A DNA stretch of 63,307 nt, the filler included, from Reticulomyxa filosa (lineage: Eukaryota; Protista; Foraminifera), in the NCBI GenBank assembly GCA_000512085.1. It is 29 parts of 29 records of this genome, joined end to end, with 100 filler letters (N's around TTAATTAATTAA, not from the genome) between each part and the next. Parts side by side here need not be neighbours in the genome. Positions count along the whole stretch, not along the records: positions 61,454 to 63,307 come from ASPP01028979.1; 28 more parts are not named here. The stretch is one strand, 5' to 3'. The position numbers and the translations under genes are program-made. Positions 61,351 through 63,307 of the stretch are shown one piece after another (positions within the stretch are counted from its first letter, which is position 1; each line of letters starts with the position of its first letter). The notes below the pieces were generated by a model. The model worked only from the letters and a program-made list of their open reading frames with translations. It ran no database searches and was not told the DNA's origin.

Positions 61351-62671
61351 TTANNNNNNNNNNNNNNNNNNNNNNNNNNNNNNNNNNNNNNNNNNNNTTA
61401 ATTAATTAANNNNNNNNNNNNNNNNNNNNNNNNNNNNNNNNNNNNNNNNNNNNCCACTTATTGGCAAACAATTAAACAATATCAAAATTTGATGGGATAT
61501 CAATACTCAAAGTCCTTTTTAATTACATGTTGACTCTTTCCTCTGTGAAACATATTTTTATAAAATTTTATATTCAAGTATTAAAAACTTTGAATGTGTT
61601 TTCTTTTTTTGCTATCATTTGCTTAAATCGGTTGGTCTTTTTTGTAATAGAACAAGTCACATAAAAATGACTTTTCAATTAAAGTTTGTTGCAGTGAATT
61701 CTTTTTGTACACATTTTATTTTTATTTTTTCTTTATTCAACAAATCAAAAACTTTGAACAAAAAGTGTCTTGATTTTTTTAAATTAACAAGAAAACATTA
61801 TTTGATCAATTCCGTTTGCCTAAGCCTACAAAAGAAAATTTAAATCGTAATATTTGAAGATAAAAAAATCAAAATGAAGATTCAATTCAACTGATGGCAT
61901 CAAACAAATGAATTGTTGTACTTTTGATTATTTTTTTCTTCAATAGTTCATACAACAATTTTTTAAATCAGTACAAATTTTGTTCAAGATATTTGAAAAT
62001 CACAACAAATGCAGAAGTTAGTCATTTAAAAAAAATCCAGTGAATTACAATGATGAAAACAAAAACAAAACCATTATATTTTACAAGTTATGATAAAAGT
62101 TCTGGTTGAACCCTTTTTTTTTTGTTGTTGTTTGTCTTCTTCTCGTTGTTTTTTTGGCTTGCTTTGGGATTTCGTTGATATCTTTTGTTATCCCTTGCAA
62201 GGCAAGCTTGTCTTGTTTTCTTTTAAAAAAATTTCTGGTCCCGTTTGTCGGACTTAGTGAGTGTCTGTTAAAAATACTTGGCCAGACCATTGCCAAGTGA
62301 GTCGGTGATAACTGAAAGGGTATCTTGTCATATATAATTTTTGTTTGTTTTCTTGTGCTTTCAACTCCGTATGAAAACACATAATATTTTTTTAAATACA
62401 TTTGTACAGTCAGCAACGGAAACGGCGTTATTGTTAAGCTTTGCGTTTGCCAAAATAATCAGCAAATTGAGCAAGCACAGCAACAGTTGCTTGAAGGTAG
62501 TGTATGTTCGCAATTTGTGTGCTTGTGTTTTGGAAGTTTCAATTTACGAAATGGCCAACAAATTGGTATGTAAAAATTAAGTCGTGTGTCGGCCAACAGT
62601 TTCACAATTACAATGCTTGCCAACGTCTATATATGTATTTTTTTATTTAAAATTTATTTAAAGTAATTAAA

Positions 62672-62981
62672 AGCGGCATAGCTCAACGGTAGAGCCCGCT
62701 AGAAAAGTAAGGGGGACTAGGGCCATCCACTCTCAGGGCTTCGGGATTGCTCGGAGTTCGGGAGAGTGGCGTAACTTCAAAAGGGTTACTGGGTTGGTCT
62801 GTGTTGCGGGGGTGCGTCAGGCATATATAAGCTTAAGTCGCAGGGGCTTATATTTTGCTTGCCCTCAATGTGGGCACACATTGATCTCATGTGGGAGGTA
62901 GCAATATCTTCCATGTGGGGTTTTTGTGCAGCCCCCTTTACTTTCCAGGCGGAGATGTGGGTCCGACTCCCACTGTCGCTT
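62672..62981 (+). ncRNA. tRNA-like RNA of ~310 nt with a large structured insertion replacing the anticodon loop
   Basis: Acceptor AGCGGCA/TGTCGCT (7 bp), T8-A9, D arm GCTC-AACGGTA-GAGC with a consensus A box (TAGCTCAACGG), T arm GTGGG-TCCGACT-CCCAC (B box with C55) and an A15-T48 pair. Segment 62696-62715 pairs with 62932-62952. It is a GC-rich island in AT-rich DNA. Confidence 0.85.
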
Positions 62982-62987
62982 ATATTA

Positions 62988-62996
62988 TTTTTTTTT
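62988..62996 (+). terminator. Candidate Pol III terminator (T9)
   Basis: A run of nine T starts 7 nt after the acceptor stem. T runs are common in this genome, so the support is positional only. Confidence 0.5.
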
Positions 62997-63307
62997 ATAA
63001 AAAAAAAAACAACAGCTCAAACAACACTCAAATGATAATAAAAAAAAGATTACCAGAAATATTACCTTGTATTTGCCAAATGTCCCCCATTTGACTTGCA
63101 CATTGATTTTTGATCGTGTAACAATGTAATGTGCGCTGATCGTTGCAACATGTTTGTTGTACAAAAGCATAAAAGGTGCTTTTGTCGACGAGAGGCGAGA
63201 TTGCATGTTTGTCTTTGAATAGCCCCCTTTTTTTTTTTTTTTAAGTAAGCATGTGCATCGTGCGTGCAAAAAGACTTAGTCCATTACTCCTTCAAATAGT
63301 TATAATG

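Follow-up and report, generated by a model that had tools for sequence, protein, structure and literature searches.

In a 63,307-nt stretch of DNA (filler between its joined parts included) from the foraminiferan Reticulomyxa filosa, hereafter the window, a 310-base element on the + strand (62672-62981) combines the outer arms of a tRNA with a large folded domain in lieu of the anticodon loop (Table 1). The explanation we favor, tentatively and with somewhat less than even confidence, is that the element is a tRNA-derived Pol III carrier gene, with the inner domain as its payload, rather than a gene for a decoding tRNA. The element lies on a 1.85-kb piece of a highly fragmented assembly. Its surroundings are AT-rich and free of ORFs, and we infer a nuclear origin only from these flanks. 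Against them the element stands out as a sharp GC island (49-55% GC vs 21-39% GC in the flanks), the edges of which are the tRNA ends, intact to the base on both sides.

Table 1. Features of the element and its immediate flanks, numbered along the window.
Feature	Positions	Strand	Sequence or remark
Direct repeat, AT-rich	62630-52 and 62981-63003		23 nt, 74% identical
Acceptor stem, 5' strand	62672..62678	+	AGCGGCA; A1-U72 is the first pair
T8, A9 and D arm	62679..62695	+	T8 at 62679; D arm GCTC-AACGGTA-GAGC
A-box-like sequence	62679-62689	+	TAGCTCAACGG; within the T8/A9/D-arm stretch
Extended "anticodon" stem, 5' strand	62696..62714	+	CCGCT-A-G-A-AAAGTAAGGGG; from the fold
Inner domain	62715..62933	+	~219 nt; three-armed multibranch junction
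Arm A	62720-62800	+	hairpins 62727-62769 (loop AUUG) and 62771-62789
Arm B	62808-62866	+	hairpin 62818-62861
ATGTGGG, four copies	62868..62961	+	at 62868, 62889, 62913, 62955
Arm C	62873-62933	+	18-bp stem 62883-62900/62905-62922; GCAA loop 62901-62904
Internal T5	62921..62925	+	possible weak Pol III stop, partly in arm C stem
Extended stem, 3' strand	62934..62952	+	CCCTTTACTTT-C-C-A-GGCGG; from the fold
Variable loop and T arm	62953..62973	+	AGAT (62953-56); T arm GTGGG-TCCGACT-CCCAC
B-box-like sequence	62960-62970	+	GGTCCGACTCC; C at position 55 is the one consensus departure
Acceptor stem, 3' strand, and discriminator	62974..62981	+	TGTCGCT, T73 (62981); no encoded CCA
T9 run, terminator-like	62988..62996	+	7 nt past the discriminator

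The intact tRNA body that had originally been predicted is seen in the fold, in ARAGORN with introns allowed, and in Rfam searches of the two halves. The acceptor stem (62672-78/62974-80) has seven pairs with a single G.U (5:68) and a mean pair probability of 0.93, and both the 4-bp D stem GCTC/GAGC (62681-84/62692-95) and the T stem GTGGG/CCCAC (62957-61/62969-73) reach 1.00, giving an overall range of 0.93-1.00 for the shell helices. The D loop AACGGTA carries A14, A15, G18, G19, and A21, while the T loop TCCGACT supplies T54, C55, C56, and A58, and C61 is also kept. The element therefore has an acceptor stem, a D arm, a T arm, and the conserved tertiary nucleotides of a tRNA: the contacts retained include T8, A14, A15/T48, G18, G19/C56, and T54/A58, together with U12-A23 with A9, and C13-G22.

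When the two halves were submitted to Rfam separately, not joined, the tRNA model (RF00005) was the sole + strand match for each. Its positions 1-29 aligned to 62672-62700 and its positions 38-71 to 62948-62981, the latter at 16 bits (E 0.17); no full-length Rfam tRNA match was obtained. ARAGORN called no gene at its default settings, and with introns allowed it recovered the shell with exactly the ends 62672 and 62981.

Two irregularities of the shell count against the carrier-gene reading. With AGAT as the variable loop, no nucleotide 26 is left between the D stem and the anticodon stem or, equivalently, C26 and G44 form a Watson-Crick pair. In addition, position 55 is C in place of the near-universal U55, just as the original prediction had stated. 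T loops of the form TCCGAxT are present in genuine bacterial tRNA-Gly and tRNA-Thr genes among the metagenome matches described below.

By sequence, the element carries the parts of a type 2 Pol III gene: an A box, a B box, and a downstream T run. Promoter-like elements in the shell had been proposed, as had a box spacing of ~270 nt and an internal T5, and all of these were found. Yeast TFIIIC copes with A-B spacings of several hundred bp, and yeast RPR1 and SNR52 are examples of other noncoding RNAs driven from tRNA-like A- and B-box leaders. No T run inside the element exceeds the T5, and just one other, a T4 at 62853, reaches four. Judged by its sequence, the T5 could halt Pol III at ~250 nt, with loss of the 3' half of the shell, which is a further point against the carrier-gene reading.

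As a carrier gene, the element would be bound by TFIIIC at its A box (62679-89) and B box (62960-70), and Pol III would start just upstream of 62672 and stop at the T9 (62988-96). RNase P and RNase Z would then recognize the 12-bp acceptor/T-arm stack and trim the ends, after which CCA would be added. The predicted product is a ~310-nt RNA whose anticodon arm, extended coaxially from an intact tRNA body, bears the structured domain of ~220 nt. An L-shaped body held by contacts between the D and T loops would stabilize this RNA and make it exportable, and the three-armed inner domain would be its working part, most likely a scaffold for protein binding. No recognizable protein-binding or catalytic motif was found in the inner domain, whose putative role as an RNA product is predicted from a modeled fold at one locus. 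That the RNA remains whole is the fate we consider most likely for it, although we suggest this with low confidence.

The element folds more stably than expected by chance. The minimum free energy (MFE) of the whole element is -139.9 kcal/mol (z -6.1), and none of 100 dinucleotide shuffles folds as well, whereas overlapping 310-nt windows of the flanks on the + strand give z values from -1.65 to +1.3. A signal on the minus strand at 62074-62383 (z -3.1) was not upheld on the 121-nt sub-stretch 62225-62345 (z -0.5).

The original prediction also held that the many G-U pairs work only on the + strand, and the numbers agree. The core fold has a z of -6.9 on the + strand and -2.0 on the - strand, the corresponding values for arm C are -6.1 and -0.2, and the helices contain 23 G.U pairs against one A.C mismatch. 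This asymmetry, combined with the excess of G.U pairs, favors selection on RNA over a DNA palindrome or MITE. We rejected the MITE or palindrome as a candidate because the structure is not equally strong on both strands. A G.U-rich pattern confined to one strand of the modeled fold is what RNA-level selection predicts and a DNA inverted repeat does not, and thus argues for the former.

Four of the five hairpins that had been proposed for the inner domain (1, 2, 3, and 5) appear in the MFE structure, with mean pair probabilities of 0.83-0.99. Hairpin 4 (62866-83) is formable, yet it is absent from both the MFE and the centroid structures. Hairpin 5 is indeed a GCAA-capped stem, but it is an uninterrupted helix of 18 pairs, seven of them G.U, rather than one of 17. 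The motif ATGTGGG occurs four times, always on the + strand, against 0.24 expected in the span searched, and none of 100 shuffles reached four; the fourth copy (62955) overlaps the variable loop and T stem.

The same observations bear on a rival that we consider rather unlikely, namely that the locus is inert and has no RNA function, being either a tRNA gene or pseudogene disrupted by a mobile element or duplication, or a member of a family of tRNA-related repeats. That a tRNA gene with a young insertion would look equally intact weighs against the carrier-gene reading. Just one copy was found in the piece and the collections searched, its anticodon loop is destroyed, the four ATGTGGG copies hint at internal duplication, and the highly fragmented assembly suits a repeat-rich genome. 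The AT-rich direct repeat around the element also fits, but it is of low complexity and its upstream copy stops 20 nt short of the element. A target-site duplication would be a direct repeat, whereas the stem extending the anticodon arm is an inverted one. Neither a poly(A) nor a LINE-like tail is present, since the element ends with the 3' half of the tRNA and then the T9, and to have that half at the extreme 3' end is unlike a SINE. Finally, the GC island, whose limits fit the two tRNA ends to the base, does not accord with this rival, and neither do the strand asymmetry and the 23:1 ratio of G.U to A.C, which are unexpected of a palindrome, a MITE, or a sequence decaying in an AT-rich genome.

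The long stem that had been predicted to replace the anticodon loop, at about 18 pairs, comprises 17 or 18 depending on its register. In the MFE structure it has 17 pairs (5 + 1 + 11) with A.A and A.C mismatches, and the originally proposed register, which pairs GGGGG with CCCCC around a bulged T, is just 1.9 kcal/mol worse. Neither directly nor after excision does the 5-bp stem close a 7-nt anticodon loop that has both U33 and a purine 37. The loops that can be enumerated on the real 5-bp stem are only CUUUCCA or AUUUCCA, both with a pyrimidine at 37, or AGAAAAA, without U33. Because no excision remedies this, the element is probably not a canonical intron-containing tRNA. This enumeration and ARAGORN with introns allowed bear out the earlier view that an anticodon loop is missing. 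The related claim that an intron-containing tRNA does not fit holds as regards the usable loop but requires a qualification, because the canonical 37/38 geometry does admit a relaxed bulge-helix-bulge (BHB).

This relaxed BHB consists of the 5-bp anticodon stem, a 3' bulge CCA (62945-47), a 5' bulge AAG (62705-07), and an 8-bp inner helix, and its central helix AGAA/CTTT forms three of four pairs, including a 32:-3 anticodon-intron pair. It opens the way to a second rival, which we regard as unlikely. A cut by the tRNA splicing endonuclease at 37/38 would free a ~240-nt functional RNA (62707-62946), linear or circular, from a tricRNA-like cassette; the ligated 71-nt tRNA-like remainder would be non-decoding, and the tRNA part a disposable carrier. 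The relaxed BHB lies exactly where eukaryotic pre-tRNAs have theirs, but its conformer is 10.2 kcal/mol less stable than the continuous helix of the MFE. The relaxed scan yields 62 such motifs in 310 nt, so that one BHB at the canonical site is weak evidence. The A-run and T-run in this region also make register slips easy. The best splice choice leaves the loop AGAAAAA, with anticodon AAA and no U33, and we know of no eukaryotic nuclear tRNA intron of such length. On the favorable side there is a metazoan precedent, in that tRNA introns there become stable circles and large structured inserts are tolerated (PMC4536317; bioRxiv 10.1101/497545).

Searches for relatives of the element gave no family. 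Rfam searches over the piece and over the element assigned it to no family; for the element (326 nt with E up to 10 and lax filters), only chance miRNA and lncRNA fragments were returned at E ≤10, in keeping with the original view of an undescribed RNA. Models for group I introns (RF00028), SRP RNA, RNase P RNA, YrlA, and snRNAs gave no match at E up to 10 in the same 326 nt. The tmRNA mode of ARAGORN (-m) found nothing, and the Rfam tmRNA model (RF00023) aligned only as a 7.2-bit T-arm fragment. We rejected tmRNA on these grounds and on its defining features: pair 3:70 is C62674-G62978 and not G3.U70, and a 4-bp D stem is present at a probability of 1.00. That tmRNA would not fit had likewise been anticipated.

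Searches of metagenomes, viral contigs, prokaryote genomes, and proteins were similarly unproductive. A metagenome pattern specifying the D arm, a gap of 248-278 nt, and a T arm with C55 gave 50 matches and no homolog, nearly all of them adjacent bacterial tRNA genes. Neighboring sets such as Thr-Tyr-Thr and Gly-Lys-Gly were seen among them, as was one true YrlA (L115). The 5' 20-mer GCATAGCTCAACGGTAGAGC occurs in 15 viral contigs, in most of them within real phage tRNAs of many identities, and a 17-mer from the T arm occurs in 70; these two probes say nothing about identity. A 20-mer from the insert had no matches in viral contigs and two in prokaryote genomes that are alike over the 20-mer only, as expected by chance. 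Stop-free frames across the element, searched as pseudo-proteins, gave no candidates, and an exhaustive search returned only bacterial repeat proteins. Of ten ORFs of the piece that begin with ATG, none had an exact counterpart in the protein collection. The literature search found no description of such an RNA. The original suggestion of an undescribed noncoding RNA agrees with these results as regards Rfam and the literature, but with only this locus found, to speak of a class is unfounded.

These results leave it quite improbable that the element is a very divergent member of a known group of large RNAs with a tRNA-like module, whether tmRNA-like, SRP, RNase P/MRP, telomerase RNA, or snRNA. 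A length of ~310 nt with Pol III-type signals would suit SRP, RNase P, and Pol III telomerase RNAs, the topology of tRNA-like ends, long helix, and large domain is that of tmRNA, and GUUUUUG (62920-26) loosely resembles an Sm site. Against this stand the Rfam and ARAGORN -m results, the lack of G3.U70, and the presence of a D stem. On reading the sequence, moreover, there is no CR-I/CR-V-like motif, no internal loop like those of helix 8 (arm C being uninterrupted), no C/D or H/ACA box, and no C-rich repeat-like template.

Still less probable is a gene for a real decoding tRNA that is interrupted by a giant intron of ~220-240 nt. With introns allowed, ARAGORN does model a "tRNA-Lys(ttt)" whose intron of 218 nt lies at 32/33, and in other respects the shell makes a good class I tRNA body. 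However, the anticodon stem of that model is defective, with A.C and G.G mismatches, and it leaves an unpaired "variable arm" of ~20 nt. The enumerated loops lack U33 or have a pyrimidine at 37, no BHB is stable, and an unconstrained intron should drift toward AT richness, whereas the insert is strongly folded and has 50-55% GC. The short piece, the fragmented assembly, and the abrupt change in composition might raise the suspicion of a chimeric assembly, or of contaminant DNA joined to AT-rich sequence. Such an origin is scarcely credible, because the change marks exactly both ends of one coherent folded unit that a T-run terminator follows, and a misjoin would not leave two complementary tRNA halves separated by 260 nt that include a complementary stem.

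If the carrier-gene reading is right, the element may represent the first "tRNA-scaffold" RNA of natural eukaryotic origin, a stable Pol III transcript of ~310 nt with a CCA tail that has given up its anticodon arm to a dedicated functional domain, but we consider this proposal doubtful. Its tRNA body would then serve as the handle by which the RNA is processed, exported, and perhaps aminoacylated or imported into an organelle, and the gene would represent a new way to express and stabilize large Pol III RNAs. Questions of charging, of ribosome or organelle entry, and of the binding partner of the domain would follow. Foraminiferan mitochondria have no tRNA genes of their own and depend on import (PMC10127745). 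If the host is truly foraminiferan, a tRNA body could bring a large RNA cargo into these organelles. Should the inner part instead be released, it would be by far the largest tRNA intron product that we know of, with the tRNA purely a carrier; a dead, disrupted tRNA gene would be a mere oddity.

Cells reuse the shape of tRNA in several settings, including tmRNA, YrlA, viral tRNA-like ends, and mascRNA. The element is like tmRNA (SsrA, RF00023) in that its paired ends form an acceptor stem and T arm from which a long helix leads to a large domain, and its size is similar to the ~300-400 nt of tmRNAs. Those RNAs are bacterial or organellar, contain pseudoknots and a tag reading frame, and have G3.U70 but no D stem. 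The element differs in having C3-G70, a full D arm, and eukaryotic-looking flanks, and as a true scaffold it would be a nuclear analog of the tmRNA architecture that arose independently. With intron-containing nuclear pre-tRNAs and tricRNAs it shares exons that flank an anticodon-arm insert extending the stem. Nuclear tRNA introns usually span tens of nucleotides, up to about 100, and leave a normal 7-nt loop, whereas the insert of the element measures ~240 nt, its BHB is disfavored by ~10 kcal/mol, and splicing would leave the loop AGAAAAA.

Another structured insert of ~200-250 nt is that of the group I introns which interrupt the anticodon loops of bacterial and plastid tRNAs (e.g., trnL-UAA), but no anticodon loop flanks the insert of the element, and its context is neither bacterial nor plastid. 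In SINEs, BC1, and the leaders of yeast RPR1 and SNR52, the A and B boxes of tRNAs are reused for transcripts that are not tRNAs. To our knowledge, the extra RNA in all of these, and in the tRNA-miRNA RNAs of MHV68, lies past a tRNA-like head, and none is enclosed by the halves of one cloverleaf. The payload of the element, in contrast, lies between two halves of an intact cloverleaf. The MHV68 RNAs reuse tRNA boxes in the same manner (PMC4337559).

YrlA (RF02553; PMC4201824) is a larger noncoding RNA with a module that mimics the D, T, and acceptor arms of a tRNA. It ends in a Ro-binding stem and its acceptor-like stem is closed, giving a permuted topology (PMC4201824), whereas the element is not permuted and has no Rfam match to YrlA. 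A likeness in design is found in engineered tRNA scaffolds, where an RNA grafted onto an extended anticodon stem gains correct end processing and nuclease resistance (PMC3401473, PMC3753655). Those constructs have the same architecture as the element but are man-made for use in E. coli or human cells, whereas the element is natural and genomic. If a eukaryotic gene is truly built in this way, evolution would have reached the scaffold design of the engineers as well.

The putative RNA gene at 62672-62981 on the + strand stands out from its surroundings in composition. It is a sharp GC island, at 49-55% GC and with a positive GC skew, against 21-39% in the flanks, and the island borders match the ends of the element. 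The piece that holds it (61454-63307) has 33% GC, many homopolymer runs, and a longest ORF of at most 111 codons. The anatomy of the element is real and non-random. Its + strand folds at -139.9 kcal/mol, compared to a mean of -107.7 +/- 5.2 for dinucleotide shuffles (z -6.1), and none of 100 shuffles folds as well. In the minimum-free-energy structure, three tRNA arms form a shell, and a multibranch junction with three arms extends from the long helix between them (see table). The shell pairs with a probability of 0.93-1.00 and the main hairpins with 0.83-0.99, which confirms the shell, long stem, and hairpins of the original prediction. Its fourth hairpin can form and is absent from the optimal fold, and its GGGGG/CCCCC register for the long stem is an alternative 1.9 kcal/mol above the optimum.

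Predicted features of the element and its 3' flank
Feature	Positions	Strand	Description	Basis
Acceptor stem	62672-78 with 62974-80	+	7 bp	minimum-free-energy structure
D stem		+	4 bp, loop AACGGTA	minimum-free-energy structure
T stem		+	5 bp, loop TCCGACT	minimum-free-energy structure
Helix replacing anticodon arm	62696-62714 with 62934-62952	+	5 + 1 + 11 pairs	minimum-free-energy structure
Arm A	62720-62800	+	two hairpins	minimum-free-energy structure
Arm B	62808-62866	+		minimum-free-energy structure
Arm C	62873-62933	+	includes unbroken 18-bp stem with GCAA cap	minimum-free-energy structure
A-box-like	62679-89		TAGCTCAACGG	sequence only
B-box-like	62960-70		GGTCCGACTCC	sequence only
T9 run	62988-96		7 nt past discriminator	
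Relaxed BHB, outer stem			5-bp	
Relaxed BHB, 5' bulge	62705-07		AAG	
Relaxed BHB, central helix			AGAA/CTTT, 3/4 pairs	
Relaxed BHB, 3' bulge	62945-47		CCA	
Relaxed BHB, inner helix			8-bp	

Positions 62551-62571 (ATGGCCAACAAATTG), about 100 nt upstream, are directly followed by GTATGT and resemble a short first exon with a 5' splice site; downstream, a CAG lies at about 63010-63012. If these signals are real, the element would lie within a host-gene intron; joining gives a short reading frame that does not convince. An AT-rich direct repeat of 23 nt (74% identity) also occurs on both sides, at 62630-62652 and 62981-63003. Its upstream copy stops 20 nt short of the element, and the repeat probably arose by chance in low-complexity sequence and not as a target-site duplication.

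The likeness of the shell to tRNA is extensive. ARAGORN found no match in the element without introns and, with introns allowed, recovered the acceptor, D, and T arms at the exact element ends. Searched alone, 62672-62700 matched positions 1-29 of the Rfam tRNA model (9.7 bits) and 62948-62981 matched positions 38-71 (16 bits, E 0.17), scores that exclude acceptor and anticodon-stem pairs. For each half, tRNA was the sole + strand family, and the boundaries were exact. Direct reading finds T8, A14, A15/T48, G18, G19/C56, A21, T54/A58, and C61, so most of the L-shape-building set is kept; a U12-A23 pair with A9 and a C13-G22 pair are also present. There are two departures: C at position 55, and no free nucleotide 26 between the D stem and the next helix (equivalently, a C26-G44 Watson-Crick pair). 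The first is not disqualifying: T loops of the form TCCGAxT also occur in genuine tRNA-Gly(GCC) and tRNA-Thr(GGT) genes of bacteria in metagenomes. The 5' 20-mer of the element lies within tRNAs of many identities in most matching viral contigs and is therefore uninformative on amino-acid identity.

The element bears the marks of selection acting on an RNA of the tRNA strand. Folding z is -6.9 on the + strand and -2.0 on the - strand for the core (62715-62933), -6.1 and -0.2 for arm C, and -4.0 and -1.5 for arm A. Under strand-symmetric mutation, G-C pairs are expected to yield G.U and A.C about equally often, and an RNA read from the + strand tolerates only G.U. The helices contain 55 G-C, 35 A-U, and 23 G.U pairs with a single A.C mismatch. 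These results bear out the earlier argument that G.U pairing is specific to the + strand and speaks against a DNA palindrome. Elsewhere in the piece, overlapping 310-nt windows give + strand z of -1.65 to +1.3. Strand asymmetry, pair census, and locality thus agree against a DNA palindrome or MITE.

The best explanation, which we hold tentatively, is a stable carrier RNA: a tRNA-derived Pol III carrier gene with the inner domain as its payload. The A-box-like and B-box-like sequences, ~270 nt apart, and the T9 run would serve Pol III. Yeast TFIIIC can work with boxes several hundred base pairs apart, and in several eukaryotes T5 stops Pol III weakly. The longest T runs inside the element are T4 and T5, compared with a run of at least six about every 130 nt in the flanks, a contrast of little weight, since GC content confounds it.

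It is unlikely, though worth serious weight, that the element is an inert disrupted tRNA gene or repeat. The same three tests oppose the idea of an old insert decaying within an AT-rich genome, whereas a young insert may be compatible with them. Rather doubtful is the reading that a splicing endonuclease frees the inner domain, with the tRNA as mere carrier, as in tRNA intronic circular RNAs (tricRNAs; PMC4536317). A relaxed bulge-helix-bulge (BHB) motif does occur exactly at the eukaryotic pre-tRNA location, implying a 240-nt intron (62707-62946) and a spliced loop of AGAAAAA. However, the same scan found 62 such motifs in 310 nt, 3-nt register slips are easy in the A-run/T-run, and the BHB conformer lies 10.2 kcal/mol above the continuous helix in energy, all of which weaken this evidence.

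A divergent known RNA is improbable. Rfam gave no match over the whole element, and a cross-check of 326 nt at E up to 10 returned nothing but chance miRNA and lncRNA fragments, with no match to group I intron, SRP, RNase P/MRP, Y or YrlA, tmRNA, or snRNA; the predicted lack of a known Rfam family is upheld. On reading the element, we saw no C/D or H/ACA boxes, CR-I/CR-V-like motif, helix-8-type internal loops, or C-rich repeat-like template. Within a 94-nt stretch (62868-62961), the + strand carries four copies of ATGTGGG (at 62868, 62889, 62913, and 62955; 0.24 expected), one of them overlapping both the variable loop and the T stem. CAUGUG can pair with itself through G.U. A history of duplication, alternative pairing, or a binding site present several times may thus lie behind the copies.

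A true tRNA with a giant intron is very improbable. On the real 5-bp stem, CCGCT/GGCGG, the 7-nt loop is CUUUCCA or AUUUCCA (anticodon UUC, pyrimidine at 37) or else lacks U33, and the ARAGORN model, 'tRNA-Lys(ttt)' with a 218-nt intron at 32/33, requires A.C and G.G mismatches in the anticodon stem and an unpaired variable arm of ~20 nt. With no credible loop and a costly BHB, a decoding tRNA is very unlikely. The original contention that no intron description fits therefore holds for the loop, none having both U33 and a purine at 37, and is tempered by the relaxed BHB at the canonical site. Misassembly is scarcely credible.

Our two-anchor metagenome scan for the shell pattern (D arm, 248-278 nt, T arm with C55) returned neighbouring bacterial tRNA genes and no homologue of the element. 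Insert-specific words gave no matches or chance matches only (viral contigs, prokaryote genomes), pseudo-protein searches across the element found no homologue, and exact look-ups of ten ATG ORFs from the piece returned no match. Bacterial tRNA-Gly(GCC) and tRNA-Thr(GGT) genes with TCCGAxT are common in metagenomes (L087, L100, L105, L134, and other scan loci), and the L100 tRNA-Thr(GGT) nearly matches the element in its T arm and 3' acceptor strand (GTGGGTCCGATTCCCACTGTCGGC). A bacterial-looking locus of comparable layout, L095:1864-2169 (+) on contig Ga0315293_10046437, has a 5' part that resembles tRNA, with D arm GCTC/GAGC, and a 3' part with T arm AGGGG/CCCCT and an encoded CCA; a 10-11-bp stem, GTCCCGAAAAT/ATTTCGGGAC, joins the two. 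These enclose ~230 nt that include a complete tRNA-Ala(TGC), the sole Rfam match at the gathering threshold. The locus folds at -123.6 kcal/mol (z -4.6) with imperfect outer acceptor pairing, and it was rejected as a homologue. The pattern also found a true YrlA (Y RNA-like, RF02553) at L115:3054-3176 (+) on contig Ga0163161_10032016 (74.7 bits; gathering score 69), a bacterial ncRNA already known to contain a module that mimics tRNA.

A new class, as originally predicted, would be based on this single locus. Retarian mitochondria encode no tRNAs (PMC10127745), so tRNA-shaped mitochondrial import cargo is conceivable as speculation if the host is foraminiferan. We found no account of such an RNA in the literature, and the element fails membership as a tRNA, tmRNA, group I intron, MITE, or Rfam ncRNA. 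The prediction that it is not tmRNA agrees with ARAGORN, which found none, with a C-G pair at 3:70, and with the presence of a D stem. In architecture, tmRNA is closest to the element, alongside the engineered tRNA scaffold, whose architecture is like that of the element.
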